This document shows positions 13,987 to 59,100 of a DNA stretch of 64,000 bases, piece by piece; position 1 is the stretch's first letter; each line of letters opens with the position of its first letter. A model generated the notes under the pieces. That model was not told where the DNA came from. It made no database searches and worked only from the letters and a program-made list of their open reading frames with translations. Where the stretch lies: positions 27,404,001-27,468,000 of the forward strand of contig NC_083236.1 in assembly GCF_032191835.1 (NCBI RefSeq), in the 5' to 3' direction. This DNA is from Heteronotia binoei (taxonomy: Eukaryota). Position numbers and translations under genes: made by a program.

Positions 13987-14133
13987 ATGGCGGGACCTCA
14001 GTGCTGCGCTGTCATGGTGACAGGGGCCAACCGTGGCATCGGCCTGGAGTTGGTGAAACACTTTCTTAAGGAACCAAATCCCCCCAAGGTGGTGTTTGGA
14101 ACCTGCCGTGACCCAAAAGGACCAAAAGGACAG
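13987..14133 (+). CDS. SDR paralog 2 exon 1 (MAGPQCCAVMVTGANRGIGLELV...PKGQ)
   Basis: ATG at 13987; CAG/gtgagt donor. Confidence 0.93.
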
Positions 14134-34097: not shown

Positions 34098-34721
34098 NNN
34101 NNNNNNNNNNNNNNNNNNNNNNNNNNNNNNNNNNNNNNNNNNNNNNNNNNNNNNNNNNNNNNNNNNNNNNNNNNNNNNNNNNNNNNNNNNNNNNNNNNNN
34201 NNNNNNNNNNNNNNNNNNNNNNNNNNNNNNNNNNNNNNNNNNNNNNNNNNNNNNNNNNNNNNNNNNNNNNNNNNNNNNNNNNNNNNNNNNNNNNNNNNNN
34301 NNNNNNNNNNNNNNNNNNNNNNNNNNNNNNNNNNNAGGGAAGGGAGGANNNNNNNNNNNNNNNNNNNNNNNNNNNNNNNNNNNNNNNNNNNNNNNNNNNN
34401 NNNNNNNNNNNNNNNNNNNNNNNNNNNNNNNNNNNNNNNNNNNNNNNNNNNNNNNNNNNNNNNNNNNNNNNNNNNNNNNNNNNNNNNNNNNNNNNNNNNN
34501 NNNNNNNNNNNNNNNNNNNNNNNNNNNNNNNNNNNNNNNNNNNNNNNNNNNNNNNNNNNNNNNNNNNNNNNNNNNNNNNNNNNNNNNNNNNNNNNNNNNN
34601 NNNNNNNNNNNNNNNNNNNNNNNNNNNNNNNNNNNNNNNNNNNNNNNNNNNNNNNNNNNNNNNNNNNNNNNNNNNNNNNNNNNNNNNNNNNNNNNNNNNN
34701 NNNNNNNNNNNNNNNNNNNNN
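34098..34721. other. Two assembly gaps (34098-34335 and 34349-34721) separated by 13 bp, followed by a purine-rich low-complexity tract to ~35040
   Basis: Runs of n; GAAA/GGAA-rich flank. Confidence 1.
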
Positions 34722-37235: not shown

Positions 37236-37446
37236 TCAGAAAGGACAGCTGCTGAGCTGCTGTGAACTGCACAGCTGGCTAAAGTCAAAGGCAGAAGAGG
37301 ATGGCGCATGGCGGGAGGTTCTCACGAGGAAAGGAGCCTTGGTGGAAGCAGTGATCTTCTCCGAAAGAAGGGCTCCTTTGGCTGAGGAAGGGCCTTGTTC
37401 TCTGTTCAGCTGCTGCATAAGAAGATTGTTTGTGGAAACAAGAGAC
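37236..37446 (-). pseudogene. LRRC36: LRRC36 terminal exon (SLVSTNNLLMQQLNRE...SCPF*)
   Basis: 211 bp, phase 2 start, TGA at 37236-37238. Confidence 0.85.
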
Positions 37447-37454
37447 CTAGACAA

Positions 37455-37484
37455 TAGATATAGATAGATAGATAGATAGATAGA
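37455..37484. repeat. (GATA)n microsatellite, tail of the adjacent SINE
   Basis: tagatatagatagatagatagatagataga, immediately beside the LRRC36 last-exon acceptor. Confidence 0.9.
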
Positions 37485-38318
37485 TATTGGATTTTTATCC
37501 CGCCCTCCACTCCGAAGAGTCTCAGAGCGGCTCACAATCTCCTTTACCTTCCTCCCCCACAACAGACACCCTGTGAGGTGGGTGGGGCTGGAGAGGGCTC
37601 TCACAGCAGCTGCCCTTTCAAGGACAACCTCTGCCAGAGCTATGGCTGACCCAAGGCCATTCCAGCAGGTGCAAGTGGAGGAGTGGGGAATCAAACCTGG
37701 TTCTCCCAGATAAGAGTCCGCACACTTAACCACACCAAACTGCCTACACCAAACAAAGATGGGCAGAAGGGGTTAAAAGATACCGCTTGTGACCAAATGG
37801 AGCCTGGCTGTCTGAACCAGGAGAGCCCCTTTCTTTCAAACCGGCACAGAAGGATTAGACTTCATAGAACTTGCTTGCCATTCTCCTGTATGCTCAAGTC
37901 GTCCCCCCACTCCCAGGCTGCAGTGATCAAAAGAATTTTAGCTACGATAATAAAATATTACATACAATAAAATTATGGAAGTGCCAACAACTGCAGATGA
38001 AGTAAGCTGTTCAGACTGGGGTATTTACTAGTAACCTCTTCTTATATCTATGCCAATCTCTTTCCTGGTTTGAATTATGCTTTAAACACCAAACAAAACA
38101 AGAACTGTTGATCAGGAAATGCCTGCGCTGCGGGTCTGCCCATGTCAGCAAGGCTCCAGCCATGCAAAGGACTTTACTACAGACATGAATGTCTGAACCA
38201 GCCCTGGCTCTGTGAGCAGAGACTGGGCTGTACGAGTGTGCAGAGCTGGCACTAAGGTCTTGGGTGAATGGACTGTACCATTATTTGCATCATGGGAACT
38301 TACTCAGTGTGAACTTAC

Positions 38319-38433
38319 TTTTGACTCTCTCGCAGTAAGCTGATGGTATCCTGTTGATTTTTAAACTGTTTTAATTCTGAAGTTAAGGCATCCACTTTAG
38401 CACTCAGCTGCTTGTTCCTACTTAGCAATTCAT
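38319..38433 (-). pseudogene. LRRC36: LRRC36 about exon 13 (DELLSRNKQLSAKVDALTSELKQF...LLRESQ), intact coiled coil
   Basis: 115 bp, phase 1 to 2, no stops, canonical splice sites; missed by the ORF track. Confidence 0.88.
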
Positions 38434-39864
38434 CTAGAAGGAAAGATCAATGGATAAGCAAAGCTAGACCCTATGTAATCAAACACGGAGAACAAAAGGC
38501 ACAGATCCAAGTGACCTGCTTTCCAGGACATTACAGCTAATAAAACCACCAAGAATTGCAGCACTTAGCATGTACCATTCTTAACTACTGATGAATTAGT
38601 GAAGTAAGATGAATCTGAATAAAAGTTAATAAACCTGCAAACCAGATTCAGACCCCACTGAATCCATGCCTGATTGTGCCAAATCTGTAGATGATTCCCA
38701 GTTTGGCATCTGATCACTGAATGTTCCCTTTAAGCTCTTCTGCTGAAATAAGGTAACCTTCACAGCTAATAACCCCCCCCCCCCCCCCGCAGTCTTTGGC
38801 TGTTTGTGTAACTTTGGTATAAATCTCTCTCTTGTGTGTATTGTATGCATCTGATGAAGTGGGCTCTGGCTCATAAAAGCTTCTGCCACAAAAGAAGTCT
38901 GTTAATTTGGGCAGAGCTGATTACCACACAGAGTGTGATCACACTGGAGATTAGGCGTAGCATTATCCCAGCTCTGAAAAAAAATGGTTCACCTTTATCC
39001 GTGCTCCTAAATTCGTACAGCCCCCATCCTGCTGCCAGGAGAGGCACAGGTTGCATATGCACAAGGAGAGTCTTCAGACTGCTCATGCGCATGCTGGCCG
39101 GGTGCGGGGCAGGTGCAGCATACGCCCAGCCATTCAGTCAGTCAGGAAATGCACCCTACATATGGTTATAGGTTTGCTACCTGGAAGTTCCCAGTAGCTA
39201 TTTAATCTGGTCCCAGCCCATCCTCAGATGAGGTAGGTACAGGTGGGACCTGAGAGGCAGATCGAGCACATTAGATCCAGATGGGAGGCATGGTTAGGTC
39301 AGGCTGAATCTCTCGTGTGATCACATCCTAGTGTTGGGGTTGGAAAGTGCCATCAAGATGTAGCTGACTTATGGTGATCCTGTAGAGTTTCCAAGGTAAG
39401 AGGTGTTCAGAGATGCTTTGCCATTGTATGCCTCTGGGTAGCAACCCTGGACTTCTCTGGTGGTCTCCCAACCAAGTACTGACCAGAGCCAACCCTACTT
39501 AGCTTATGAGATAGAAGAAGATCAGGCTAGCTTAGGCCATCAAGTGACCCCTCTGGAATTGCAACTCTTTTTTTGTATTTTTGCACTTGTGTGTGTGTTT
39601 GTCTGCATCTGGAAGTCATGGTGACTTCTGGTGACTGAACCCTACTGGGGGCCTAGAGGATATTCAGAAAGGTGGCTGAATAACGCCTGCCCCTGTCCTT
39701 GAAATAGGTCTCCCATCTAAGTGCTTGCCAGAGTTGACCCTGCTTAGCTTCTGAAATCAGGCTTGCCTGGGCTATCCTGGTCAAGGCTGGAATTGCAACC
39801 TTTGTTATTTAAACTATTTCTTTCCTCTCTTTCCCTAGTGCCTGATTCCTCTGCTGAGACTTAC

Positions 39865-39955
39865 CATAAGAAAGTGAATGTTTTCCTTGGGAACTGTAAT
39901 TCATAGCAGCACTTGCTTCCCCGCTTAGTTCCTTGAAGGATGCTACCTGGCTCTC
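39865..39955 (-). pseudogene. LRRC36: LRRC36 about exon 12 (ESQVASFKELSGEAS...HSLSY), shortened, in frame
   Basis: 91 bp, phase 0 to 1; ctccccag acceptor, G/gtaagt donor. Confidence 0.7.
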
Positions 39956-40766
39956 CTGGGGAGGGAGAAGCAGCAAGAGAGTTAGGGCTGGACTAGGCTG
40001 TTCATAGTCATAGTTGTGACAGAGAGGGCCTTCCTTTGGTAGGACTAGGAAGGGCAAACAGATGCTTGCAGTACAAAAAACAAACTCACAGGGGAGGGGA
40101 AATTGCACCCTCTTTCCACCCCCACTTCTTCCCTTCTTCTGCTTTGCTCCCCCCCAACCCAGCCCAACCTTCCATTTCCAGATTACCCCAATTGCCTTAT
40201 TTCTCCTTCTCACCAATCCGTATTTCTCCTTTGTGATCAATTCCTAACTTTTTAAAAAAGCTTTTTACAAAAAATTTCAACCCCAAATGTCAACTGGATT
40301 TCTTTTTATTTTTACAAAATAAACACATGCACAGACATCACTAGCTACTGGGGGGGGGGGGTCCTAGCCCACACATTTTAATTTTTTAAAATATATTTTT
40401 GTGCATGGCATCCTTTTGCGTTGGGACCACTCATCACAATTAGATACATAATGTTTAATTCCCTTAAATAATTGTGTGTTACCTCTATGTTTTTGCTGTT
40501 GGAGCAAACAGCTTGTGAAGGGTCATCAGCAAAATCAGCATGGGGGAGGAGATAACAAATGGTGCCACAATCCTGATCCAACTTGCCCCTTCCCTGCTAT
40601 TTTTCTCAGCTTAATCCACCTCACAGGGCTGTTGTGAGGACAAAATGGAGAAAGGGAAGTGCCCTCATCCCTTTGGGAGGAGTATGGGATAAACATGTAA
40701 CCAACAGATGACAGATGTTGCTACTGTTTTACCAGAGACGAAGGCACAGACCACAGGCTTCTCTAC

Positions 40767-40921
40767 CCTCAAAAAGTGCTGAGAATACTTTGGCAGGTCC
40801 TTAGGAATCCTGGAATTGATTCCTGTGGACTTTGAACGTGTTGTGGCTACAGTAGTGGAGGAACTGACCTGTTGTGAAGGGGCAGCAGCCATCAGATTCC
40901 TCAGCAAGTCACGAGCTGCAG
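40767..40921 (-). pseudogene. LRRC36: LRRC36 about exon 11 (AARDLLRNLMAAAPSQ...); donor position uncertain
   Basis: ctgtag acceptor; ARDLL..L..APSQ matches human. Candidate donors give exon ends at 40767 (phase 0), 40789 (phase 2) or about 40869 (phase 0). Confidence 0.65.
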
Positions 40922-41297
40922 CTACAGAACGACAGAAATATAAACAGGGTCTCATACATGAATTGGCACATTTTAGGAATTTGGGAAATACTGATGGTTA
41001 GTGCCTGTGCTCAATCTTGTCCAGGAGACTCCTTTTGACCCTGGAAATTCTTCTCTGAAGGCTAGTGGGTAAGGGAAAGATGATTTCTATGTCCTCAGAG
41101 GTTCCCTGGCTGGGACCCTTCAGTGAAAACAGGTCCTTCCCAAAGGGAAGATCTGGTGAAGGCCATCAGAAATGAAGCACAGCAGGCAAGTCATTCCCCA
41201 ACAAACTGGCACAAGCCCATGGCCAAAGGTAAGCAAAGCTGTTTGTCCCTGTCTCCCAAAGGTAAGAGCTAGCAGGAGTTCTAGGCAAGCCACCTAC

Positions 41298-41454
41298 CAA
41301 GAAAATTGTTATTGAGGAGAAGGGAGCCTGAACCATTCCAATAGCGATCCACAAGTTGCAGGAGTTGTAGCAGGACAACGACAGGAGAACTTTTATCTGC
41401 ATCATGGGGACTTTCTGTCCGGATATGGCCGCTCTTCTGCTCACTGAGTTGATG
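41298..41454 (-). pseudogene. LRRC36: LRRC36 about exon 10 (…LLQLLQLVDRYWNGSGSLLLNNNFL), intact
   Basis: 157 bp, phase 0 to 1; strongly conserved WNGSGSLLLN motif; canonical splice sites. Confidence 0.88.
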
Positions 41455-41680
41455 CTACAGAGAGAGAGCCAAAGTCAAACATTTGCCAGATCTTTGCAAA
41501 CTTCTCACTTAAAGGAATGTCTAACAGAAAACAATAATCATCATACATTTTTGAAATTTATTTTTTAAAATCTGTAACTGACATATCAAGATGCTGATAA
41601 AACTGTATACATCTATACATCAATTACCAGCTTTAAAACAGAAAAAGACAACTGCCCCCCAAGTGGCATGGAGTGGGGGG

Positions 41681-41865
41681 CAGTGTTCCCTCTGAGCTGA
41701 GTTAGTGTGAGCAAGCTCACAGTTTTTTAGCCTCCAGCTCACGCATTTTTGTCTCAGCTCAGGAAAAATGGCCCCAGAGCAAACTAATTTATGGAGTAGC
41801 TCACAACTTTAATGCCAGTAGTTCACAAAGTAGAATTTCTGCTCCACAGCTTAGAGAGAGTATTG
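41681..41865. mobile_element. hAT MITE (cagtgttccctct termini)
   Basis: 8-bp TSD gtgggggg at both ends; homologous to the 42938 copy. Confidence 0.8.
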
Positions 41866-42074
41866 GTGGGGGGGGGGGGGGGTGTCTGCTCCGAGGACCA
41901 GGGGAGGGGAAATGTAGGAAAACCTGCCATACAGACACCCAGTTGCTGCTGTGTAGCATCAGCAGCTGCTGTGACAACAGGCAAACCCCAGAGACATGTC
42001 ATTATGTGGAACAGCCAAGAAGACACGTTCCATTGTCCACCGATCTGCTCCACAGCACGGAACAAAGCACTTGC

Positions 42075-42369
42075 CTCCTTATTTGTTTCTTTTGAGCAAT
42101 GTGTAGGGCTTCTGCTGTGTTTAAACTCCACTCTTGAAGGACTGAGTGAGCGACTGACTGAAGATTCTTGCCCTTTCCGGGCCACAGATAATGGTGCTGA
42201 AACTGGCTGTGAATCCTCAAGTGGTTTCTCATCCAATAAAGATCTGCACTTAGACTGGAAATCCCCTAAGCTTGTAAAAGTAGAGTTGGATAATGGACAA
42301 AAGCAACTGTTCAGCTTTGCATCTAGGGAAAGGGGACACAAGAATCAAAAGAGCTATGTTACTCCAAAA
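42075..42369 (-). pseudogene. LRRC36: LRRC36 about exon 9 (RSLSPSRVEF), with alternative acceptors at 42369 and 42322 and a GC donor
   Basis: The distal acceptor gives an immediate TAA; the proximal ttccctag acceptor gives an open 248-nt exon; donor GAG/gcaagt. Confidence 0.7.
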
Positions 42370-42937
42370 CTATAATATCAAACTGATTTAAAAATTGGTA
42401 TACTCAAAACAAAAGTATACTGATATTCTGAGAAATGTATGTCGTTGAGCTTTATGTCATTAATGACTTTTTGATACCCTTTCTCCCTTTTTTTCCTTCT
42501 GTACCCTTCAATTATATAAAAAATACCTATTAAAAAAAAGCAAAAGTTCTCAAAAATATTCACGAAACAAAACCAAAACACAAACAGGATGTGTCAACTT
42601 TATTAAGGCGACAGAGGCAGATTCTGTCAGAATAAGATCTATTCAAAATCTTCCTTGTAGAACCATGGAGGGGCCTTACAACTTTCAAAAGACAGATTAA
42701 TCAGCTGCTGACATCAACAGTGATGTTGCTGGGGAAATGGCTTTTGTCCACAAGCCCCAGACTTTCCAGAGAAAAAGCAATAAGGAGACAACAAGGGCAA
42801 GTCACCAGAAGCTGATGGGAAAACAAATATTTCATCAATTATTGAATCGTTTGCAGTATAATACTCAGCCATACTTTGGAATTCAGCCAGCACTAATTCC
42901 TGACTAAAGGAACTTTGGGTGAGGAAACTCTCAGGAG

Positions 42938-43153
42938 CAGTGTACCCTCTAAGCTAAATTATTGTGAGCTAGCTCACAGATTTTTAGCCTCCAGCTCACA
43001 CATTTCTGCCTTAGCTCAGGAAGAATGACACAGGAGCAAACTAATTTATGCAGCAGCTCACAACTTTAGTACCAGTAGCTCACAACTTTAATGGCAGTAG
43101 CTCACAAAGTAGAATTTTTGCTCACAAGACTCTGCAGCTTAGAGGGAACATTG
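42938..43153. mobile_element. hAT MITE (cagtgtaccctct / agagggaacattg termini)
   Basis: Perfect 8-bp TSD ctcaggag at 42930-42937 and 43154-43161. Confidence 0.85.
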
Positions 43154-43998
43154 CTCAGGAGGAGAGCTCATGGAACTCATCAGCCAGTCCAAATCTCTAA
43201 CTGGTCAAGGAATTTGAGGGGTACTGAGAAAGGAAAGGCAAAACCAGTATTTCCATTTCTTTTCCTTGTCCTGCTCCCCCACCCCATCTCATGGCCATGT
43301 CAGTCCACATAAAATCTAGAACCACAACAAAACCAGTGCAATATTTTTTACTAGGATAAATCAAACTGAAACCAAACATTGTGTGAGCGTACCAGAATTC
43401 TTCATTGGACAGGATATTAGAAAATTTAAAAAGGGTGGGGAGCAGATTTCTCAGGCTGTAATGTTAAGGTTTGCTCTTACAACAAGCATTTTGAAAAGGA
43501 GACGACTGAGACACTAAGTACTGGCAGAAGGATGAGATGTTGGACTGCTTGAAGAGCAGTCTTCCCCTCCCCAGTTTGGTGGTTAGGAGCGTGTACTCTA
43601 ATCTGGAAGAACCAGGTTTGTCCCCCCCCTCCTCCAAATGCAGCTGCTGGTGTGACCTTGGGTTAGTTACAAGTTCTCTCAGAGCTGTTCTCTCAAGAGT
43701 TCTCTCAGTCCAACCTATCTCACAGGGTGTTTGTTGTCGGGAGGGGAAGGAAAGGAGACTGTAAGCCACTCTGAATGAAGAGCAGGGTATAAATCCAATC
43801 TCTTCTTTTTCTCACAGTAGGTGTATAAGGCAGAATCTTTTTCCCACAGTAGGTGTATAAGGCAGAGAAGGACGTGTTTGCCTACCCAGCACATACTGAA
43901 GCAGTGTAGATCCCCCACAGCTATGCAGAACCTCAGAAAGTCAAGCAACAGGAAATTAGACCACTAAATAAATAAACAAACAAATATTTTTTCTTCAC

Positions 43999-44475
43999 CT
44001 GAACTGTGTTTCAAGGAACTTTCAGGATCTGAGCCTGTTTGCAAGTACTGTCCTCGGAAATCCCCACAAGAGGACCAGGTAGCTGCCAGGGCTTCCTTAG
44101 CATCCTTGGAGCTATAATTACGGCCACTGTCTGCTGCTTTCCTGTCATCTGCAAGTCTCTTATGCAGCTCCTTGTGAGCAGTGGAAGATGCGAGACACTG
44201 ACACTCATAACTACCCAGCTTGAGATCTCTGGCCAACTCATGGGAGTTCAGCTTCCCTGTGTCATTCAAATTCAGTCTTCTGGTTGGAGAAACACCTCGG
44301 CCAAAGTCAAGCAGGTCCAATTTCCGTCCTCTTTCTTTTTCGCTGTGAGGGAAGTCTGAAGGGGAGTCTTCGGAAAAGGACACATGAAGTCTTCCTTTAC
44401 TAGATCTGGCTCTGCGTCTTACTTGGGAGTGCATGGAAGTTTGGGCTTGAGGGGATGAGGAAAGGAGCTTGTGGT
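43999..44475 (-). pseudogene. LRRC36: LRRC36 large internal exon (about exon 8), open reading frame retained
   Basis: 477 bp, phase 1 to 1, no stops; LHVSF...EKE, HKELHKR and SSCGD resemble the human sequence; AG and G/gtgaag boundaries. Confidence 0.75.
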
Positions 44476-45460
44476 CTACAAAGAACAGCCAGAGAGAAGA
44501 AAGACATTAATTTAAAAACCCTGTTAAATGTATAGCCCCTTTCTCACAAGGTTCTCCTGTCTAAGGGGATAACCAAATCCACTCCTACTTAGCTTCAGTA
44601 GTGCTACACATCAGAGACTCATTGCATTTCAGAAAAAAAATACTGTTTAAACTACATTTTTTTTCCACTTTAGGTGTCACCCCTACTCTTGTTTGTCTTT
44701 ATCAAACGATGTTTCCGGCCCATAAACTTTTCTGTGACAAACAGAAGTGCCAATTATAAAGAAGCAGATACTTAATCAGCATTTATACAAAGGTTCCACT
44801 TATATGTGTGGCAGAGGTTCGTTTGATTTCCTGAAGCATAAGCTGAGACAGTATCATGTGCGGCAGGGACAAATGGCCACAGACCTAGCTTATTAGTGGC
44901 CATGTGGCTAGCACTGCAGTGGCTGCAATAGGAAGCCGCTCAAAATGTATCATGGAGGATGCACTTTTGGTATCAAGATAAGGCTGATTTCTCTTAAGGG
45001 AAACATCCAGTCATTAAAAATTTTAGAAGACTAGAAAAGAGTGTTCAAGCAATCAAATTTCCACATGTGCTTCCTGGATTTTATGAATCTTTTTCTTAGA
45101 TGTAGGCAACACTCTTACAAACAAGTAAGGCATCCTGGAACACTAAAGTGGGATATAAACAGGGATGAAATTGTGTGGTTATCTTGCTATTGTTCCAGAT
45201 CCCATATGGCACACCTGTGGCAGGGCTTTCATAAAGCAGGTTCCTCTGCATTTTCCATCCATCTCTCATGTCCCACCTGTTGCACTGCTGGCTTTTTTAC
45301 ATTTCAAAGGAAACTGGCAACAGGTAGATCATTATAACACTATATATATATATAGTATAACAATATACAATATAGATTGTTACATCAACAATCTATAAGG
45401 TTCCCAGATTTCATTTCATAAAGTAAATATGTAGCCCTTTTTGTTGTGCAGTTATGAGAA

Positions 45461-45752
45461 GGGCCCCGGACGCAGAGTATTAAAGCTGCAGTACTGCAGT
45501 CCTAAATTCTGCTCACGACCTGAGTTCAATCCCCGGCAGAAGCTGGGTTTTCAGGTAGCCGGCTCAAGGTTGACTCAGCCTTCCGTCCTTCCGAGGTCGA
45601 TAAAATGAGTACCCAGCTTGCTGGGGGGAAAGTGTAGATGACTGAGAAAGGCAATGGCAAACCACCCTGTAAAAAGTCTGCCATGAAAACGTTGTGAAAG
45701 CAACGTCACCCCAGAGTTGAAAACGACTGGTGCTTGCACAGGGGACCTTTCC
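45461..45752 (+). mobile_element. Sauria SINE
   Basis: Matches the 19108 and 20596 copies; gagaagggc repeated at 45456-45464 and 45756-45764. Confidence 0.85.
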
Positions 45753-48435
45753 TAAGAGAAGGGCATTAGAAAGAATCTGCACTAAAAAGAACCTGAAGTG
45801 GTACAATCCAGATGCCTCATTTGCTGTTTACAAGAATTAAGCCTGAGATATCAATCAGATCAGCATTAGGATCTTAAGAACTCTTTATTTCCTCATATTC
45901 AAGATGTATGCCATTTTTCCTCAAATTGAAAGAGTAACTGAATAGAACACTCACCACAGTCCAAGGGGTTATGACTCAGTAAATGTCTTCTCTTTGCATC
46001 ATCTACCTAGAAAATATTAGACATTTAGCATTTGGGAAAGGATCACAGTTACACATTTATTGATTTACTTTCCAATCTGAATCAAAGGATCTGAATAAAT
46101 ATTCATAGATTGTCATACATCATAGCAAATGTTGTCATGATTTACCTGGACATTGTACATCCCTCAAGCTGAATCAGACCAAAGAAAAGGCTGTGGATCT
46201 TGGGACAGAAACTCACAAAATGACACACAACTGCTGCCATGGAAAGCCTACTCCCACTGAAGTAATTAGTGATTAAAAATATGTGACATGGCATCATCAA
46301 GCTTCAAGTTTCCCCTTTCCAGCTCAATTTAATTGGTTGTCACTTGCAGGGGCAAGAATCTCAAAGCACCATAACAGTATGTCATGCATTTTTGCTTTTG
46401 GACAAAAAGGGAGAAAGAGGATGCTCTTCTCAAAGGCAACCACACATCTTTCTAATGCTTGGTTAGGCTCTCAGAGACTATTGTGTTGTGAGAAGTTTCT
46501 GATATATAGGGGAAGCTGAGTTTGCTTTATTCTAAGTTCCTCTTGATAAAATGATATCCTCCTTCAGTGTGCATATCTCTAGGCTGGAAATTATCTACCA
46601 CATATTGGGGTTGCCAGATCCCCTCTGGCCACTGGCATGGGTGGGGCGGGTATGGTTCCCAGGTCCAAATTGGGAAACTCCAGGAGATTTGGTGGCGGAA
46701 CCTCAGGAAGACAGGGACCTCTGTGGGGCACAATACCACAGGGCCCACCTTCCAAAGCATCCATTATCTCCAGCAGAACAGATTTCAGTAGTCTGGAGTT
46801 GAACTGTAATACCAACTGTAATACCAGGGAATCCCCAGGTCCCAGCTGGAAGCTGGCATCCCTACTACACTCTCAGAGCTAATGTTTTCTTAACAATGAA
46901 GAATTTTAACTATCTGAAGTTATAAGTGGCTGGTGCTTTGATACTGGTGATTTCTAAAATTCTGGGTTTTCTGTTTTTTGTTGTTGTCAAGTACAGCAGA
47001 CTTAGGATTGCATTGTGAAACTTCAATTGCTAGAGTTAAGGAAGGAAGATATCAAGCACCACCAAAACCAGCTTCGGAGCCCTGTCTATGGAGGAAAGCC
47101 CTCTGCCCACACTCATCCAAGCCTACTTACTAGTATCTGCATATGGAGGTTATGTGGCGTGTGTTCTTTAGTTGACTTGTTGGCTTGCAGTTTGGAAGCG
47201 GCTGAAACTCTTACAGAATTGTTTCCATCATGGTATGGCTTATGGTGGTGAAAAGACTGGCTTAGGTTTGATTCTGTGTTCAAAGGAGAAATAACTTTCT
47301 GATTCTCCAGCATAAAAAGAACTAGAAAGAAACTTAGTCATGGCTTCTTCTACATAGGGGTATTTTCCCAAGGTGCTTCTCTCTTTATTGGGGAGTTTGC
47401 ACATGGAGATCATGATCTTTCCAAATATGACTCGTAGGGCTCCCAGGGATTTCCCTAAAAAAGAAGGGGGGAAACCTCCTTTTTTTAAATTTAAAAAGGA
47501 ACCAACACACTAACTGCAGGCAGACCTTCCATGCAACAGCTCTGCCTACAACCAATACAGGGGGAAAGGGGTGGAACTTAGTGCTGCCTTCAGGATGACG
47601 ACACTCAACTCTAGTCTGTTTCCCCCTATTTTAGCCCTTTAACAGGGCTTTTAAAAATTGATTGTTGTATGAGTGAAACACATAAAATTGTACACAGTCC
47701 AAGATTCACAGGATCCAGTGTTCAATGGACAAAATCTAATTTTTCGCAGATCTGTTCCACAAAGGTCTGCATCTTTTTAATGTTAACTTAATCAACATTG
47801 TCACTGATCACACCTTCTCATACCAGTAACTGATTAATGTTAGTGCTTTCAATCGCCATGCTATTAATATGGTCGGGATGTCTGACTGGGTGACTCCATT
47901 TCAAATGAGGACAGATAAAAACAGGAGTGTCTCACTGACGGGTTAAATGGTGTGTCTGACTGCAGTCCAGGTCTCACACATGAAGGATGCAGCATCTACA
48001 TCAAAGAATACCTGTCCAAACTAAACGCACACTTTCATTTTGCTTTTTCAAAGCTGTCTTTCATTACTTCTGGAGGGCACTTTAGTAGTCAACAGTCAAT
48101 ACTGGAATGCCTGGAATGACTTTGCAAGATCTGATTTGCTCCAAGTAGATGACACAATCTCAGTATGAAAAGCATGCACTCCTAGACTCTAAGTGGTCAC
48201 TCAAGAACATTCATGGAAAGTCAGTCCACTTCTTTTACTCAATAGTACCCATCCAGTGGGGTCTACCCCCTCCTGCTTCCCTCTCCCAAACTGGACCTGA
48301 GGAAGCCTAGCATTTGTCTCATTTGGGATGTGTCTGGGTGCTCAGATTGTTCCTGCTCCAGAAATATCTCTACTGGCAGTAAGAACCAAAATAATTTTTT
48401 CAACTATCACTGCATAAGAAAAGCTCCCCCTAGAC

Positions 48436-48910
48436 CAGGGTTGTCAAACATAAGACCTGGGGAATGGAACACGCCTATCAAGGGCTATCTTCCAGCCCAT
48501 GAGTGACTGGTGCAAGGAAGGAAACAGGATGTTGTTGTGGGGGGAGGGCAGTGGGCAGAGCCACTTTGATTGTGACTCGGCATGGCAGAATAATCTTGTC
48601 TGCAGCAGTCAAGCAGAACCCCCCTTCACTTCAGTGGCAGCCTCACTGGTAAACTGGAAGCCACCTCAGCCACATTCATGCTGGCTCTGCAGTCTGCCCA
48701 TGCAGGTTTCCCTCTGAATGCACGCCCCGCCCCCCAGCCCCTGGGGCCTTGCAGTGAGGAAAAACCAACTTGGAGCTTACCAGCTGCTGTCCTTTATAAA
48801 GTTTATGTCTTCGGTACCTCACATTACATTTTATGACACACACGGCCTGGCCTTATAAAATCACATTTATGTCAGATCTGGCCTTTGTAACAATGGGTTC
48901 GACATTTCTG
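48436..48910. mobile_element. hAT (Charlie-like) MITE
   Basis: cagggttgtcaaac / gttcgacatttctg termini; TSD ccctagac / ccctagat (7 of 8 match). Confidence 0.7.
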
Positions 48911-51900
48911 CCCTAGATCATACACAGTGACCTTGATTCCTACCTGTAAGCTTTTTAATGTTTTCTGCATCCAAACTGGACATTGTAAAGATCGCCTGGT
49001 CTCGCATTTGACTCCTCATTGTATGTTCTCTAGACCAGCAAGATGCAAAAACAAATTTAACAGGACATTGTTAGAATTTAAATGTATTTAAGTACTGGAC
49101 ACTCTTTCTTTATCCAAATACACATCTTCAGCTGACTGTGAATGTGCAAAATTTGAGTCCAGCAGCACCTTAGAGACTAATAAGATTTCCAGAGTACAAG
49201 CTTTTGAGAATTAAAGCTGCCTTCATTTTCTACAGCAGACCAACGTGGCTACACACCCAAAACTTACTGTGAAAGTATGCATCTTATTTTAAATGAAGTA
49301 CTTTCATTCTATCCCTAACTCCAACAGGCATTCACTCTTACCTTTCTCCATTTGTCCACAATCCCTCGTGACTTTTATTTTAGACTGAAGCAAGAAACAG
49401 ACTGTTGGTATATAGTTGTGAAGTGCGGAACATGCAATGCATCTGCAACGTCACTATTCATCTCCTTATGTCTGAAATGTGCCCAGGTGTGTGTGTGGGG
49501 GCCTCCATTTTGAGACTTATGTAGTGCTGGGCTGCTGAGTTTCTGCATTGGTGATTTCTGTGGTCTCCAAGACAACATTGTCATAAAATCCCCCTCTGCT
49601 CATGTTGTGCCCCCAGCACTAGGATAACATTATGGTGGTAAAAACACTTGCATAAGAATAACCATTCTCTCAAGATACAGTGAGGGTGAAAAGGCAACTG
49701 CTCTCTGGCCATGCCAGCACAGTCAGTGGTTCAACTGAGGATAGGAGCTCAGCCCACCACAGTTCTCCTGAGCACTACAGAAATCCCAAGTAGAGCATAG
49801 ATAACAGGATGTGGAGCTTGTAATGGGCCCACTTATGGATTATATGAAAGTAAACAGAGCATAGACAGTTCTCACAATGGCTAGGGGTGAGCGGTGCAAT
49901 CCAACAAGTAGCGGTATCAGGATGGAAGCTGTTTAATTTGTATACAAATTATTGGGGCAGAGGGAGCAATCTAGCAGTCCAGTTGCCAAGTCTGTAGATT
50001 ATGCCAAATTTACAGAATGGTAGATTGTGAAGAGCTACGGGACAATCTCTCTAAATTGGGTGAGTTGGCAATAGTGTGGCAAATGTTCAAGGTGATGCAT
50101 ACTGAAGCAAAAAATCCTAATTTAAAACATATACTGATGGAAGGAAAGAGATCTTGGGGCTGCAGTGGAAAATCTGATGATAAGGTTGACTCAGTGTGCT
50201 GAATCTTTCTGGAATATTTCATATACATACACATACATAGCCTGGAGAAGGATTTTGGTGATGGGAATTCTAAAGAGGCACTTTGCACAAAAAAGGAAGT
50301 GAGGGAACACCTAACTGGGACTGCAAGGACTCAGTCCAGGTAAGCAAAGGAGGGAGATCCCTGCCTCAGTTTTGGATTGTTGCCTCTGTCTCTTTCCTAC
50401 AACAGTTACCTACTGTGTTATTAGCTCAACTGCCCTTCCTCCTGAAGAGCTGAAAGCAGAGCCTTCCTCCCAGGGGACACATGAGAAGTAACCATAGTAT
50501 AGAGAAAGTAGCCCCTTTGGATAGATGCAGGCAGGACACCACTGTGATGTCATGCAAGTTTTACCTCACATGCCATGCAAATTTTATCTCACACACCAAC
50601 CCCACAACCACAGCTATTGCTGGACAAACAGGATTCCTGTAGCCTCACAGGAACACAACCCCAACAGGTGACCAAGTACCATTTGCAGACAGAGTTCCAT
50701 TGCAACTCCTGACAAAGGGGAAGTTACAGGCCCAACAACTGCACAGTGTTTCCTCAGCTCAAGCCCAGTAGAAGAGAAGAAATTGGATATATACCCCGCC
50801 CTTCACTCAGTGGCTTACATTCTCCTTCCCCTCCCCACAACAGACACCCTGTGAGGTAGGTGGGGCTGAGAGAGCTTTTAAAGAACTGCTCTTGAGAGTA
50901 CAGCTCTGAGAGAACTTGAGACTGGCCCAAGGTCACACCAGCAGCTGCATGTGGAGAAGTGGGGAATCAAACCTGGTTCTCCCAGATTAGAGTCTGTGCT
51001 CTTAACCACTACATCAAACTAACTCTCCTCTAGACATATCACAGACAGTTTGCATACAAACTGTGTACATGCTATCTTTTCCTGTAGGCAAACTGAATAA
51101 CTCTTCTTACAGTCAACATACTAAGGCAGGATGTACAATTTAAGGCACAGTTGTATCCAGGTTCTGATCCTCAGTTTTATATTTAAAATGAAAGTGGGTG
51201 CTGACTTTTCCTTATGAACAGATACATGTTCACTGCTGTATGTACAGGGCTGCAGTTTTCCTAGCTGAACAAAGGCCACAACAGCAGTCTAACTTTCAGC
51301 CTGCCACAGTGAGGAAGATTCCCACAGGTAGCCAGCAGAACAAAACAGGTTTCCTTCTGCAGCATCAAACTGTCAACTAAAGCCAAGAAGCTAGAAATTT
51401 TCCATTTGTAGAAGGGGGCTGCTGGTGTTTATGGTATGGAACCCTTTTGTAGATTGACTGGGAAAGCTAGAAATTCCAGGAGAGCATCTGAAGTGTGAGC
51501 TTCTGAGGGTGAGGAGGAAAAGGCTGTCATTTTGGAGACCGCTCTGGCAGAAACCAAAAGATAGCCTTGGGGAAGGCATATCTGCCATAGCATAGCAGAC
51601 CGTTTTGCTTGCCACACTGTGATAAGCCTCCACCAGCAGAACTGTTGGGGCTAGAGGCACAACAGAAGGCAATAGGCTTATGCCTGCTATTACCTTCTGG
51701 CCCTGCACAAGCCACATGTTAGGTGGTTGCTGAGATGCTGATCCAAACATGATCTGCCAAGCTTAACTCTCACACACCCCTCCCCATTTTGTTTGCTGGC
51801 ACAGCAACATCTTAACAGGGAAAGGATGCATTTTTTTCCTGTCACCTGGGTCAAAAAGACAGTCTACCCCTAACTGAAGGAAAGAGGGATTTGAGAAAAT

Positions 51901-53585
51901 GACCTCCAGAAAAAAAAAAAAGATGGAGATCAAAATCTGAAAACTTTAAGATTATCCTGTCTACTTCTTAACTCACTGTCATAGGGGGTAAGTGCAAGAC
52001 CCAGAAACGGAGGATAACTTTTAACACTCTTATTTATTCTTCCTTTGCTCTGTAGTGACTGGGTGATTCTTGCCAACTACAAGTTTGTCCTTACAAATAA
52101 CATATTTTTCTTTTTACGACTTTGTTGCTATTGTGGTCATGCAGCATCCACAGACAAGGCCTTAACATGGTCTCAAAGAAGGGGCCAGGAAAGGCTAGGA
52201 ACTCCTAATTTAAAGACAAATTTTAAAGAGACAAAGAGAGAGAGAAAGAGAAGACAACAGAATGGTTTTTAGAGGGACTAAATCAGTATACCTTAACATC
52301 TTCTATATGTTATAAAAAGAGGGAAAGAGGCAGAACAAGGCTAGAAAAAGATGAATTCCTCTCACTAAAGTCTAGTAATTTGGGATACATGTCAGGTAGG
52401 TCAGTTCCTCATCTGCTGTGGCAGAATGGAAATAATGACAGCATTTGTCTGTGTATTTAAGACCTACACAAGGGAACAGAGAGTATACGGCCAGAGATGC
52501 AACTTGGATTAGAGTCCAGTTTAATGCATACTAAGATGAAGGGTTTTGGGATTGTTTCCCAGATGTGTATGTCTGGCTCACATCTGGCCAGGCCAGCCTG
52601 ACAATTTCAGGTGTATCTTAAATGGTCCCCACAACTTGCTGCACCAGAAGCACTGGGTGATACAGCTTACAGTGGCACTGCAGAATATAGCCACTAGTGC
52701 AAAACATGGAGACACCTCACACCTTCATAGGGAGCATTGTTTGGTTCAGAATGGCTGATAACAGATGGGCAGTTTGGGGTGGATGGGAGGCATCCCAAAT
52801 TGGGCTGACTCAGAAAGAACTGTCCCAAACGATCCACATGCTCCAGCGCAAGGCGCCCTTATCCTGCCTGCAGGGCACCTTGGCATGGTCAGACGACTGT
52901 AGCACACTATTCCCTTAGAGTGGTTTGGTTTTCTTTTTCCCCATACATTTTAGTAGTCATGCGCATATGCATGCTCATGTGCTCTGGGCAGTTTGTTAAA
53001 AAAAAAAGCAGGTTCTCACCACCAAGGCACCTCACCTGCATGCTTCCGTGTCCAGATGTCAAAGAGGCGATTGGAGTGCAGCTCAAAAATTTGCTACTAC
53101 TTCGAAAGTGGTAGCTTTTTGAGTCACTCTGAGGACACCAGAGGATGCGGTGAGTATAGGATGAGGACGGGCAGCAGATGTTAGCGCTTGGAAGGATTTT
53201 TCATGTCGGTTTCTGAGGCATCTCTGAGTTGGTCCAAACTGCCCATCTGTTATCAATTGAATTGTGCCTATGTGGCTTTGCAATATGAATGAAAAAAGGA
53301 AGGGACTTCTACCAAATCAGCTCCTGCCAGTCAACAATGTACAGCCTACCAAGGCATTCAGAGGCCTTCCCTAGGCAACATAGCTGGAACTACCTTGCCA
53401 CCATTTGACCTTTTCTATTGTATAAGAATGCAACTATTTGAACAGCACATGCACAGACCTGTGCTGCTATATAACTGAGGTGGGCCCAAGTACAGGATTC
53501 TTGTGTGCTTAGCATCTCTTGTAACAAAGGGTGTATATCAAGCAGAATCCACAACCCAGAAACAAAAGCTAAACAACATCCATAC

Positions 53586-53652
53586 CTTGACTTCTCTTTG
53601 TTCTTGAGGCTGAAATGCAGGTGGGCAGCTTTTCTTTCATTCTCTCTGTCAT
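53586..53652 (-). pseudogene. LRRC36: LRRC36 exon 4 (DDRENERKAAHLHFSLKNKEKSR), shortened but in frame
   Basis: 67 bp; cctttag acceptor, AG/gtatgg donor; ERKAAxLHF motif. Confidence 0.8.
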
Positions 53653-54000
53653 CTAAAGGAAACAGGAATGAATTCACCATTTGAAAGTGTTGCAGAGAAT
53701 TGTGTTTTCACTTGTTCAGGTTTATGTTTGGGTAGAAGCAGGGTGATAGCAGGGAGGCATGCTGGTGTGGTGTGTGCATTCATTGCCTCCTTCCATAGGA
53801 GGCTGGAAGAGAGGAGTCAACGGCATCCCACTCCATGAGAAATTACAGGTCTCAAAACAGCAAGCACAACTCCCAAAGCAATTTGGCTCAACAGGAAGCC
53901 TCTAGTTAAACTGAATAGCAGATGCAAACCATCACTTTAAGATAAGGACCCCAAAAAACAACGTGGAGCTGTACATATTCTTCTTTGCACTTTATCTCAC

Positions 54001-54178
54001 CTAGTTTTTCAGAGCTTGTAATTTTCTCACTGTGAACAGCCAATAATCAGAGTCATTCCTGGTTACTGGGTTGAGGAGAAGGTCTAGCTTTCTCAGGCGA
54101 GGGAAAGTCTGGAGGCAGGCTACTTCCAGCAAGGATGAAATGTGATTATAATGCAAATGACTGTAAAGACTCTAGGCC
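54001..54178 (-). pseudogene. LRRC36: LRRC36 exon 3 with two frameshifting deletions and a stop
   Basis: GLESLQSFAL* (TAA at 54146-54148). The homologous HYNHISSLLEVACLQTFPRLRKLDLLLNPV...DYWLF peptide is in a shifted frame. The end reads CTG AAA AAC TAG instead of CTG GAA AAA CTA G. Confidence 0.88.
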
Positions 54179-54535
54179 CTGCACTGAGAAAAAAAAGGCA
54201 GCAGTAGAGTTTTCAAAGGGAACAGTGCTTTAAACAACAAACTTGAAGGCACATTTCTTCCGATTTCCTCTCATTCAGTACAGCCTGAGTTGTCTTCTTT
54301 GTCCTACTCTCATGGGTAAAAAATAAATGTGATAATCTAGTCCTTGCTGCTATAATTCACAGAAATTTTAGCGTACTCTTTTAAGGAGTCAGCACTGACT
54401 AGGTATTTTATTTAATTTTCTATTGCAAACACGGTCTTACAGAGCAAGAATCATGCTGGAAACAGTTAAACCAGCTCTTCCAGGTCCTTGGATTGTATGC
54501 ACATAGGTCAAGAAGACCCAGAATACAGAACTCAC

Positions 54536-54667
54536 CTCCAAGCTCATGAGCAGGTTCTTTGACAAATCTAAGTACTTGAGGTTTTTAAAAGATTTCAGAC
54601 CATCTCCCAAGGAGACTAGGTATTTTGTCTGCATAAGTTCTTTGTAGTGAGAGGGAATCCACCTGTT
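54536..54667 (-). pseudogene. LRRC36: LRRC36 exon 2 with 4-bp insertion frameshift
   Basis: EQVDSLSLQRTYADKI in one frame and VSLGDGLKSFKNLKYLDLSKNLLMSLE in another, separated by CCTA (+ strand tagg, 54617-54620). In-frame TAA at 54585-54587. Confidence 0.88.
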
Positions 54668-54794
54668 CTGGAAAGAAATGAGAACTTGTAAATGTGTTTA
54701 AGTCCCTTGTATAGTTGTTCAGCTGAACACATTTCAACAACTTTCATTCTGGCGAGGTTCAGATATTTTAATTAATAAATAAATCGGGGGAGGG

Positions 54795-55200
54795 ATGTGA
54801 CATGTGGATCACGTCAGTGGTCCATCTAGTCCAGCACCGTTTCACACAGCGGTCAACCTGTTGTCATGGAGGGCCAACGAAGCAGGGCACAGATGTTACC
54901 TCCTGGTATTCAGAGGTTTATTGTTGCTGAATGTGGAGGTTCACCTTCAGTTACCATGGCTGGTAGCTGCAGATGGATCCCTCCTCTGCGAATCTGTCTA
55001 CCCTCCCTTTTCAAAGCCATTTCCATCCAGCAGCGAATTCCACAATGAATCACACGTTGAATTAAAGCAATGATTTCCTTTTGTCTGTCTTGAATCTAAT
55101 GCCCATCAACTTCATTGCCCAACCCAAGTTGTAGTATTGTGGGAGAGGGAGAAAAAGTTCTAATGCATTTTCTCCAAGCTATGCGTATTTTTACAAACTT
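54795..55200 (-). mobile_element. CR1 LINE 3' end in LRRC36 intron 1
   Basis: Same text as the 7392 element (ggtccatctagtccagca...ttttgtctgtcttgaatcta...gagggagaaaaagttc). Confidence 0.8.
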
Positions 55201-55479
55201 CTAACTTCCTTCCTTTGCTTTTTCTCTCCCCTCCGTCCCTGGTATTTTTAGGGATCCTTTCTATTGCTGGGAGCCCTTTGGCATGAAGAAGAGGCTATAA
55301 AACATGACTTATGATTATGCTGAATGTGCGACCTACGCTTTCCACTCCAGGTAAGGGGCGGAGGTCAGAAGCAGAAGGGGCCTTTTGCTGAACAACCACT
55401 GATCTTTAGTCGTCCTTCGGGGGGGGGGGGGAGGCTCAGACAGACTCCTAGCAGAGAAGCTTCACTTCCCAAAGTCTTG

Positions 55480-56130
55480 CGCGCTCAAACACACCCAGAA
55501 TGACACAAGTGCCCGTATCTTTTCTCCACAGTTGCCTAATACTCCTCATCCTCATCCTTTGGGTTTGGAAACCATTCCTCAAATTTGAGCAGGCGCGAGC
55601 TGCGGCCGCTCCTAACGGCTCCCCCGGCCCAAGAAAAAAGAAAGCAGGGAGAGGAGCCGCCCAGTCCTCTCGTTCTGCCTCTCCAGTCCTGCCTGTAAGA
55701 GTGCCTCTGGGCGCGTGCAGGGCGCCCCTCCCTCTCCCAGCGGCTTTTCTCTCTCGCCCCGCCTTCCTTTTCTCCCCCTGCTCCAACTGCCGTCCTCCGC
55801 CCCCCCCCCCCGGTTACCTGGCTCGAGGCCTCGCAGGGCCTGCTCCTCCCGCATCCAGGCCTCATTTAGCTCTATCTCCAGCGCCATGGGCCGCGCGTTG
55901 CCAGGCAACCCGGCCCAACGTCCGCCCGACAGGGGGAGGGGTGGGTCGCTGGGAGGCAGTTGAGCCGTCGCTCGGCCGCCCCTCCCCCCAGAATGCACCC
56001 TCAGTTTGCTCAGCATGGTAATGGCAGCGCTGAGAGAGCTAAGGAAAAACACCAACCCCGCCCCTCCCCCCCCCCCAAAAAAGCTAGGAGGGCAGGGAAG
56101 GGGGAAAGGCAACCAAACCTTGTCAGGGTG
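55480..56130. promoter_or_regulatory. CpG-rich bidirectional promoter shared by LRRC36 and KCTD19
   Basis: The most CpG-dense tract in the window; divergent ATGs at 55887 (-) and 56015 (+); X-box GTTGCCAGGCAAC at 55897-55909; GC box at 55921-55928. Confidence 0.8.
55818..55887 (-). pseudogene. LRRC36: LRRC36 exon 1 (MALEIELNEAWMREEQALRGLEP-), intact
   Basis: 70 nt (23 codons + G) then gtaacc donor; resembles human MAEQWELDEEGIRRLGALTLEQPE (recalled). Confidence 0.85.
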
Positions 56131-59100
56131 GGCTGGGGGACAGCAAAAAAGCAAGATCCAGTTGCCTCCTCAGCCAGCTAGCTCTCACCTCTAGGAGCGA
56201 AGAGGAAAAAGTGCCTCTCAGCATGCTAGGGTTGCCAGCCTCCAGTTGGGGCTTGAAGATCTCTTGGAACTGGGCATCGCACCATTCTTTGCAATACTAA
56301 AACATCTGCTTTGTCTCACAGCTCCAAAATACAGATGAGCAATTATGCTTGCAAGATTAAAATGCACTAACCATCCAGTTTCTGAAGGACATATGTTAGG
56401 GATGCCATTCTTAGATAAATTGAAATTGCGGCCCATGTTCTGGTTCTGAGCTTGGTATAATGAGGCTAGAAATAAATTGATTAAACCCCTTTATGCAACA
56501 CTGGAAAGATTATCCACCAGATATTTTGGTTATTTTATTATGAATAGATTCTAGATTAGAAAACATTCTTTTAAGTAAATTTCTTATTCCAGCCATGAGA
56601 ACTCAGGCAGCCTGTAATAGGATGGCCTCCTTTGTATGGCATGCCCTGGTTCTCTGGCTTGAATTCTTCCTTTGTTCTTCTTATTACCAACTACTTTTAA
56701 CAGATACTGCTCAAGATCTGCAAGGCAGGAGATTAGAGAAAGGAAGAAAGAAAGTATCTCCAGATTACAGAGATCAGTTCCCCTGGAGAAAATGGCTACT
56801 TTGGAGAGTGGACTCCATGGCATTATATGCTGCTTTCCCAAACCCCAACCTCCATCCCCAAATCTCCAGGAATTTCCCAACCTGAAGTTGGCAGCCCTAC
56901 AAAGGGGAGAGGATGAGATTGATACAATCTAACTGACATTTACCAAATGGGCATTGTTACTAGAGTGTCGGGTTAGGATCCTGGATGTCAGGTACTACCA
57001 ATCTCTACTGCCAAGAAAGCCTGCTGGGTGACCTTGTTCAGCCTAACTCACAATGAAGGCCTGTTGTGGAGAATAAAATGTAGGAAGGAAGAACAGTGTA
57101 AGCTGCTTTGGGTCCCCATTGGGGAGAAAAGCACAATATAAATAAATGAAATAAATATACAAGCCATCGTGGCTGCTGGTCTGTCTACTATCTATTTAGG
57201 TGCCAACTATCGACTTGCTCTCCATTCTTACAAGCATCATCTTTAATCTTTCACAAACAGCCTGATTATCATGAGCATCCCTTCTTCCAACTGTGGGCAG
57301 CTGCTCAGGAATCAAGCCTCTTTGGCCAATTTTTGGAGCAGGAGCAGAAGCCAGACACAGACAGCAGGCTTCAAAAAAAGAGGACTAAAAAAGCAATCTG
57401 GCTGCTCTGTGGAGGCAGAATGTGGCACTCCTCAGGTGTTGCCTTCATTGGTGCTCCGCTGGACAGCTAGGCTGGGGGGGGTCTGGGTCAAGGAATTCAG
57501 CTTCGCACTTTCAATGGAGTACAGCTAGTACCATCTTCCTCCATCAAGAGTCTGGGTGTGATCCGAGATGCCTCCCTCTCACTGGAGACTCAGGTCATAA
57601 ATATGGCCAGGACAGTGTTTTTCTATCTTCAACAAGCGCAGCAACTGATCCCCCACCCATCCCATGCCGACCTGGCCACAGTGATCCATGCAACGGTCAC
57701 CTCTAGATTAGACTATTGAACACACCCTATGAAGGGCTACCCTTGAACTTGCTCTGGAAACTTCAGCTGATCCAGAATGTGGCAGCACAGATACGGACCC
57801 CTTTGAGAGCACATATACAACCTGTGTTCCAACAACTGCACTGGCTGCAGATTGAGTACTGAATCAGGTTCGAGATTCTAGTACTTACCATTAAAGCCCT
57901 AAATGATCTGGGGCCATCGTATCTACAGGACCACCCCTCCCTATAGACCCTTTAAATGTATTATGCTCATCATCTATTAACAACCTACAGGTAATCCCTG
58001 CCCTCAACCAGGACCATGAGACTCGAGCTCTGTGGGACTTAGTTCTGTTCTGCAGGGCCTGTAAGACCAACATGTTCCACTTGGCATATGGTTGAGAACA
58101 GTGATGGCTAGGGAGATTGGTTGGCCTCCCACCCTCCTGGCTGCCTCTCCAGCTGCCCACCTGTGATAGATTGTTTGGGGCACGATCTGAGATAATAAAT
58201 TGTCAAGTTATAAAAATAGTAGAATTTAAATTTTAATATTTAATTTAACTGTAATATTTTATGTAATTAAAAGTTGATTTTATTGTATATTTAATTGTTG
58301 GAAGCTGCCCTGCTTGCCTGGGAAAGGAGTGGGATATAAGTTAAATACATTAAATAAATAATAATTGCACCCACTGTAACAGGGCTCATTGGTGTTTTTT
58401 AAATGGAATTGTTGCTCTACACATCATTGACTTGATTTTTTTCCTCCCCAATTAGGAAGAGCCAGAAACCATTAATGAATTATCTGAGGAAGAGATCGTT
58501 CATTTTAATGTTGGTGGCTGGTGTTTCTCAGTTCCTAAAAGCAAAGTGGCCCAGTTTCCAGATTCCCTGCTCTGGAAAGAGGCCTCAACCTTGACTGAGA
58601 ATGAAAACCCAAGACTATTTATTGACCGAGATGGATACACCTTCAGACACGTCCATTATTATTTGCACACGTCCAAACTGTCTTTCTCTAGCTGTGCTGA
58701 ACTGAACCTTTTGTATGAACAGGCACTGTTCTTGCAGCTAATACCTCTTTTGCAGGTAACAACCAATTTATTGCTGCTCTCCGAAGTATAGAGAGGTGGC
58801 AGAGTCTGATGGAAATCCAGGGTGGACTGTGCTAAACACACAAATGGCACAATTCAGTATCTTCTGTACTGAGCTCCACAGACAAGGGTAGCAACTCAGC
58901 TAGGGCCACAGACTCTCCTTCCCAATTAGTATGGCCAACTTCTAGCTATCTTTTCAACTGCAAAGATGATCTGAAGCTGGAAGATCATGTTTATCTCCAT
59001 AGTATGAGGAAGTTTCACCTGCTGACCAATCTTCTTGCTATTTTCACACCAGTTATCTGCTCCAGGTTTACTATCTTGGGAAGGTTTTTTTTGTCAAAAA

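Follow-up and report, generated by a model that had tools for sequence, protein, structure and literature searches.

Canonical LRRC36 is judged from its sequence to be inactivated in the Heteronotia binoei assembly, and we hold firmly that the normal protein cannot be made. The locus was found on the minus strand of the 64,000-nucleotide stretch of DNA that was analyzed (referred to as the window), with 14 exons that are collinear with annotated gecko LRRC36. The event itself is of an ordinary type, in that a gene under weak constraint has been lost, in whole or in one domain, in a single lineage; the unusual point is that the remaining frame is open. A unitary pseudogene with its distal frame still open was ranked first among the readings considered and is given about an even chance; it was placed first because residue-level constraint is lacking, the exon 6 donor is mutated, and the NCBI model is truncated.

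According to the pseudogene reading, canonical LRRC36 would have been lost in the Heteronotia lineage after its split from the Paroedura lineage, with (i) the LRR-repeat exons 2 and 3 hit by changes of +4, −14, and −1 nt; and (ii) the LRR-cap exon 4 hit by changes of −9 and −18 nt. Read from the conserved ATG, the product terminates within exon 2 at 50 residues. Transcripts that start at the canonical promoter, which is common to KCTD19, are predicted to meet the premature stop long before the final exon junction and should undergo nonsense-mediated decay or yield a 50-aa peptide, which would make the gene a unitary pseudogene. The whole coding sequence, coiled-coil exons included, has since changed at the neutral amino-acid rate, and the open distal frame would be a matter of chance or else what is left of weak selection. 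The loss was probably tolerated, since LRRC36 is a weakly constrained paralog of CEP72.

Identity, gene order, and copy number of the LRRC36 locus

LRRC36 is a poorly understood centrosomal paralog of CEP72, and KCTD19 is essential for meiosis in male mice. The two genes stand head to head in H. binoei, and the assignment of the locus as LRRC36 beside KCTD19, proposed in an earlier sequence-only reading, was borne out by this synteny together with the 14-exon collinearity. The neighboring gene was identified by one exon:

58456–58788, plus strand: KCTD19 neighbor exon, BTB-like segment, which confirms the head-to-head synteny (context only)

A BTB_2 gene was likewise found upstream and on the opposite strand at the LRRC36 loci of all three other geckos examined (Eublepharis, Paroedura, and Sphaerodactylus). 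Exon-by-exon alignment was performed across four geckos, Heteronotia, Paroedura picta, Sphaerodactylus townsendi, and Eublepharis macularius, with Paroedura and Sphaerodactylus LRRC36 each reconstructed exactly, in 14 exons, from protein and locus. All 14 Heteronotia exons aligned in the same order with those of Paroedura and Sphaerodactylus. Gecko LRRC36 (740 aa in P. picta, 715 aa in S. townsendi, and the E. macularius locus) resembles that of Heteronotia in its head-to-head arrangement with KCTD19, in having the same 14 exons and phases and nearly all of the same splice sites, and in a protein identity of 60–80% by exon.

When exon 8 was used as a query, reptile LRRC36 proteins were retrieved along with a 300-aa NCBI model of H. 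binoei, “uncharacterized protein LOC132582278,” which is the only product that the NCBI pipeline calls at the locus. This model was 100% identical to the window over exons 7 and 8 and 99% identical over exon 9 and its read-through. An exon 3 query detected a single LRRC36 copy in the 2.63-Gb genome, and a second intact copy was therefore rejected. The next best match was the CEP72 paralog on another contig (54% identical), whose homologous exon is intact and full length; that the window locus is itself CEP72 was rejected on this identity and on the synteny with KCTD19. In sum, the reading frame is disrupted relative to intact orthologs, and the genome holds no second, intact copy.

The central motif and the C-terminal coiled-coil exons are present, as shown by alignments of exons 10, 13, and 14 to the proteins of geckos, turtles, and Hemicordylus; a private 3-nt deletion and several replacements were also noted. 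Pfam searches of the distal exons returned nothing useful. The N-terminal LRR domain (Pfam LRR_9 type) was not found in one reading frame: pieces of the LRR peptide are recognizable (LRR_9 E-value 8e-5, 22.7 bits, below the Pfam cut-off of 30.5) and sit in different frames with stops between them.

Lesions in exons 1 to 4

Lesions were defined against the orthologous gecko DNA. The first four exons of the window gene are as follows:

Exon 1, 55818–55887, minus strand: 70 nt; ATG at 55887–55885; donor GT; ends in phase 1; intact
Exon 2, 54536–54667, minus strand: 132 nt compared with 128 nt in the three other geckos; 4-nt insertion
Exon 3, 54001–54178, minus strand: 178 nt compared with 193 nt in the other geckos; deletions of 14 and 1 nt
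Exon 4, 53586–53652, minus strand: 67 nt compared with 94 nt; two in-frame deletions of 9 and 18 nt

The coding part of exon 1 aligns without an indel to the three other geckos, in keeping with the intact 70-nt, phase 1 exon described previously. Read in phase from exon 1, exon 2 begins with the conserved start of the LRR region and departs from the conserved peptide after K-I, with the conserved continuation (VSLGDGLKSFKNL...) found in another frame. The cause is the 4-nt insertion, which can be placed equivalently as CCTA at 54617–54620 or TACC at 54619–54622 and which shifts the frame to a TAA at 54585–54587; by spliced translation, the product from the exon 1 ATG is 50 aa. Exon 3 is entered as GLESLQSFAL followed by TAA at 54146–54148, and its conserved LRR peptide continues in a second frame that closes on a TAG formed by the last three bases of the exon. 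Its 14-nt deletion (junction 54159/54158) removes about one LRR beta-strand motif, and its 1-nt deletion removes one G between 54011 and 54010, near the 3′ end. The sequence-only reading had called the exon 2 insertion with its stop and short product, the exon 3 peptide and stop with the LRR peptide displaced to another frame, and the missing G near 54010, and each of these calls was reproduced by the reading frames, the four-gecko alignment, and the spliced translation. It had estimated that exon 3 had lost about 9 + 5 + 1 nt; the gecko DNA alignment resolved the “9 + 5” into a single 14-nt deletion, so that the loss is 14 + 1 nt. The two exon 4 deletions were not on that earlier list and are added here. 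The 9-nt deletion takes three residues (T/A-I/V-R) after LDDR in the LRR-cap region, and the 18-nt deletion lies near the 3′ end of the exon. Because the net change across exons 2 and 3 is −11 nt, their lesions are not mutually compensating. Exon 3 also shows three arginine replacements, R>C, R>L, and R>W, each at a position that is invariant in six other reptiles.

All five indels (4, 14, 1, 9, and 18 nt) fall in non-repetitive exon sequence, and the gene contains no N run. Outside the gene, N runs of 238 + 373 nt (34098–34721) and 256 nt (10693–10948) were noted, the former within a strongly AT-skewed, low-complexity stretch. Intron 3 (53653–54000) measures 348 nt compared with 692–961 nt in the three other geckos; several hundred bases are therefore also gone between the damaged exons 3 and 4.

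In Paroedura, Sphaerodactylus, and Eublepharis, exons 1 to 4 are uniformly 70, 128, 193, and 94 nt and are read in a single frame (three of three), in contrast to Heteronotia, where the LRR exons of 132, 178, and 67 nt are accompanied by two premature stops. The five lesions in exons 2 to 4 are private to the Heteronotia genome, and the earlier proposal that the frameshifts are lineage-specific holds against the DNA of all three other geckos. Since the lesions are private among the four, they arose after the Heteronotia lineage split from the Paroedura lineage. Other gekkonids (e.g., Gekko and Hemidactylus) were not found among the matches listed for Hemicordylus and Paroedura LRRC36 queries, and the lesions are therefore datable only to after the split from Paroedura. 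In E. macularius, exons 1 to 4 are intact in the DNA although the NCBI model is without the LRR part (locus 5733–8432 and 10001–23843). The NCBI annotation of this species splits LRRC36 into a 382-aa “LRRC36-like” protein, which has the exon 5 Met as its start, and a second model of 186 aa for the 3′ exons. Either the gene has an internal start and the intron after exon 10 is retained, or it is mis-modeled.

The open distal frame

The remaining ten exons were found in a different condition:

Exon 5, 48944–49029, minus strand: 86 nt; no indel; holds a Met at 49019–49017
Exon 6, 47131–47273, minus strand: 137 nt; no indel; ancestral donor mutated
Exon 7, 45955–46006, minus strand: 52 nt; intact
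Exon 8, 43999–44475, minus strand: 477 nt; large central exon; open; no private indel
Exon 9, 42075–42322, minus strand: 248 nt; ends at the GC donor GCAAGT
Exon 10, 41298–41454, minus strand: 157 nt compared with 160 nt; private in-frame 3-nt deletion
Exon 11, 40752–40921, minus strand: 170 nt; intact
Exon 12, 39865–39955, minus strand: 91 nt compared with 100 nt; ancestral acceptor lost
Exon 13, 38319–38433, minus strand: 115 nt; coiled-coil region; intact
Exon 14, 37236–37446, minus strand: 211 nt; ends at the ancestral stop TGA, 37238–37236

Exons 5 to 14 (1737 nt) form a 579-codon ORF that runs from the exon 5 Met (ATG 49019–49017) to the ancestral TGA with zero stops, zero frameshifts, and a usable splice site at every intron. 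Most of the reptile sequences in the comparison share this Met, at which the LRR-less turtle isoforms and the Eublepharis model are predicted to start. For each of the two damaged splice sites in this part of the gene, a substitute that keeps the frame lies close by, at 6 and 9 nt. At exon 6 the ancestral donor GT is now AT (47136–47135), and a consensus GTAAGT lies 6 nt downstream (47130–47125), the use of which would preserve the frame; at exon 12 a new AG acceptor lies 9 nt downstream, with the frame preserved. The 3-nt deletion of exon 10 falls within the most conserved central motif. The GC donor of intron 9 (GAG/GCAAGT; 42073–42074) is common to Heteronotia and Sphaerodactylus, and Paroedura has an 8-nt deletion at this donor and a GC donor that lies 12 nt upstream in window terms.

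The integrity of this frame was compared with neutral expectation in two ways. In a random-placement simulation, the probability that no stop would appear after the 110 branch-specific substitutions in exons 5 to 14 was P = 0.03. From the intron rate (26 indels in 4334 columns), which may overstate the exonic indel rate, 10.4 indels were expected in exons 5 to 14, 7.2 of them frameshifting; only one was observed, in frame (P about 3e-4 for all indels and 7e-4 for frameshifting ones). Independent of the intron-based rate is the contrast between the two parts of the gene, in that five of the six coding indels lie within the 415 nt of exons 2 to 4 (P = 0.0013). Decay is therefore not seen across the whole coding sequence, exons 5 to 14 departing from neutral expectation, and neutral decay does not easily explain the intact distal frame. 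Counting against the pseudogene reading are thus the 579-codon ORF with its lack of stops and frameshifts, the clustering of the lesions in exons 2 to 4, and the in-frame splice substitutes.

The 300-aa NCBI model of the locus follows another path. It apparently starts in exon 5 from an ATG of a different frame (MQKTLKSLQ; 48944–48970), has the donor of this exon spliced straight to exon 7 (45955–46006) so that exon 6 is skipped, and reads through the exon 9 GC donor into the intron. Exon 6 skipping may be a real splicing pattern; as modeled by NCBI, it breaks the frame from the exon 5 Met.

Selection on the Heteronotia branch

The dN/dS analysis that the sequence-only reading had suggested exon by exon was run by exon group. 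A four-taxon maximum likelihood branch model (our own GY94-type implementation, F3x4) was applied to the four geckos, with the codon model and the neutral benchmarks both being our own scripts. For exons 5 to 14, omega on the Heteronotia branch was 1.00 (95% CI about 0.63–1.68), indistinguishable from 1, compared with a background of 0.49 (LRT p = 0.006). The same pattern was found for exons 10 to 14 (1.04 compared with 0.40, p = 0.0125). For exons 1 to 4, the Heteronotia estimate was 0.58, uninformative by itself given its wide interval (95% CI 0.27–1.3), and the background was 0.36 (p = 0.32). Parsimony counts agreed with the branch model. On the affected branch, exons 5 to 14 have accordingly evolved under relaxed selection, with omega near 1.

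That the high omega is an artefact of low dS was rejected, as the dS of about 0.067 on the Heteronotia branch matches the intron rate of about 0.069 per site (0.105 for Paroedura). Lineage-specific intron substitutions numbered 300 in Heteronotia and 453 in Paroedura over 4334 aligned columns (introns within 37447–55817), which makes the neutral branch length of Heteronotia about two thirds of that of Paroedura; the ratio of indels to substitutions in introns was about 0.09 on the Heteronotia branch and about 0.07 on that of Paroedura.

The replacements point in the same direction. Among the residues of exons 5 to 14 that are invariant in seven other species, 14 of 103 were replaced in Heteronotia compared with 2 of 103 in Paroedura (p = 0.003), and in the LRR part 9 of 73 compared with 3 of 73, including the R>C, R>L, and R>W changes. 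Replacements on the Heteronotia branch were equally frequent at invariant and variable sites. For most of the branch since the Paroedura split, the whole gene has therefore been free of amino-acid constraint. A loss of function that extends beyond the LRR domain alone is supported by the omega of 1.0 and by the replacements at invariant sites. The earlier proposal that the LRR domain has been lost in this lineage is upheld by the lesions and by the failure of every LRR-frame rescue considered; the death of the whole gene is not established, as the 579-codon frame is open.

A possible LRR-less remnant and other explanations

Ranked second is domain loss instead of gene death, in which an LRR-less LRRC36 would still be made and selected, at least for an uninterrupted frame; we hold this as a tentative possibility. 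Started at the exon 5 Met, the predicted protein would have about 579 aa, and an ATG that closely precedes exon 4 would make it slightly longer; its production would require a transcript start downstream of exon 3. The preservation of the distal ORF, its splice sites, and its in-frame-only indels beyond neutral expectation argues for such a remnant, as do the predicted LRR-less forms of turtles and Eublepharis that start at the same Met. Further support comes from two non-gecko squamate transcript contigs (SRR6291270, positions 1–720; SRR12656984, positions 1–1400) that carry LRR-less LRRC36 ORFs of 637–639 aa, both beginning MKQY... within an upstream extension of exon 4. In the SRR6291270 contig, exons 1 and 2 are degenerate, with an in-frame stop and about 15 of 39 exon 2 residues changed, and exon 2 is joined to the upstream-extended exon 4 with exon 3 skipped. 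The pairwise dN/dS between the two ORFs was 0.41, and the LRR-less form is therefore under purifying selection in that squamate lineage; these transcripts may reflect an independent LRR loss with a functional remnant. Like the open frame of Heteronotia, the ORFs of these transcripts and of the predicted turtle LRR-less isoforms (594–601 aa) begin beyond the LRR exons and extend to the usual stop.

The likeness is limited in two respects: turtles also retain full-length LRRC36, unlike Heteronotia, and the Heteronotia branch, with its omega of 1.0, does not resemble the constrained LRR-less ORFs of the other squamates. Further evidence against a selected remnant is that invariant residues were not avoided, even in the coiled-coil exons; that the exon 6 donor is mutated and the NCBI model skips this exon, with the frame from the exon 5 Met broken as a result; and that the remnant would require an internal promoter and expression in Heteronotia, both of them putative. 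Other LRR-less models were noted among sauropsids. All three listed LRRC36 isoforms of Carettochelys insculpta (594–626 aa) and a 430-aa LRRC36 model of Rhineura floridana are without the LRR region, and no snake, iguanian, or bird LRRC36 was among the matches listed in the protein searches. Among the matches listed, these observations hint at wider LRRC36 variation in sauropsids and prove nothing.

Published work on the paralogs was also considered. LRRC36 and CEP72 share N-terminal LRRs and a C-terminal coiled coil, LRRC36-GFP localizes to the pericentriolar material, and depletion of LRRC36 has no effect on ciliogenesis in cultured human cells (PMC3431927). The CEP72 construct C72C, which is without residues 1–135, still localizes to centriolar satellites and binds PCM1 (PMC3431927), and it offers a functional model in favor of an LRR-less remnant; C72C is, however, an engineered fragment of human CEP72 and not LRRC36 or a reptile protein. 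Cep72 knockout mice are viable and fertile, and Lrrc36 has been named as a possible redundant gene (PMC9585255). As in Heteronotia, one of the CEP72/LRRC36 paralogs is dispensable in Xenopus (Stowe et al. 2012, PMC3431927). The two cases differ in that the CEP72 locus is reported by the authors to be lost in Xenopus tropicalis, whereas in Heteronotia it is LRRC36 that is hit, with the locus present and most of the frame open. A literature search for LRRC36 loss in reptiles found no paper.

It was considered improbable that the lesions stem from misassembly of a poor stretch, or that the assembler picked a null haplotype in a species that still has an intact allele. A homology search with the 86-aa open frame of exon 2 found no independently assembled copies, which leaves some room for this explanation. 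Against it stand the five indels of differing length in non-repetitive exon sequence of a gene free of N runs, the radical substitutions at invariant residues that accompany them, and a neutral substitution pattern along the whole branch, which points to an old relaxation and not an artefact.

It is most improbable that an intact LRR protein is still made through exon skipping, recoding, or the use of another start or other splice sites. One frame of exon 2 is open throughout, with an ATG ahead of the conserved LRR peptide, yet in exon 3, which it reaches in phase 0, it is closed after 10 codons, and rescue through an alternative start was rejected on this ground. The skipping of exon 3 (178 nt), of exon 2 (132 nt, wrong phase), or of both leaves the frame broken, no combination working on phase arithmetic given the net −11 nt, and one LRR repeat is physically deleted.

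Implications for LRRC36 in geckos and other squamates

The pseudogene reading, which we continue to place first, and the LRR-less remnant have in common the loss of the LRR domain. As a natural, lineage-specific LRR-domain knockout, the Heteronotia gene would mean that full-length LRRC36 is dispensable in at least one gecko lineage, and the LRR lesions would explain why the locus is annotated as an “uncharacterized protein” in H. binoei. A broader proposal, which we regard as rather unlikely, is that the LRR module has been dispensable more than once in squamates with the rest of the protein kept, such that the 579-codon frame of Heteronotia is held open by selection amid fast sequence turnover, in parallel with the unrelated squamate lineage of SRR6291270 and SRR12656984. 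If this were true, the essential part of LRRC36 would be its central and coiled-coil region. Heteronotia LRRC36 may also serve as a natural experiment that bears on the importance of each part of the protein, and the pairing of neutral amino-acid change with a preserved 1.7-kb frame presents a small, concrete puzzle on how dying genes decay.
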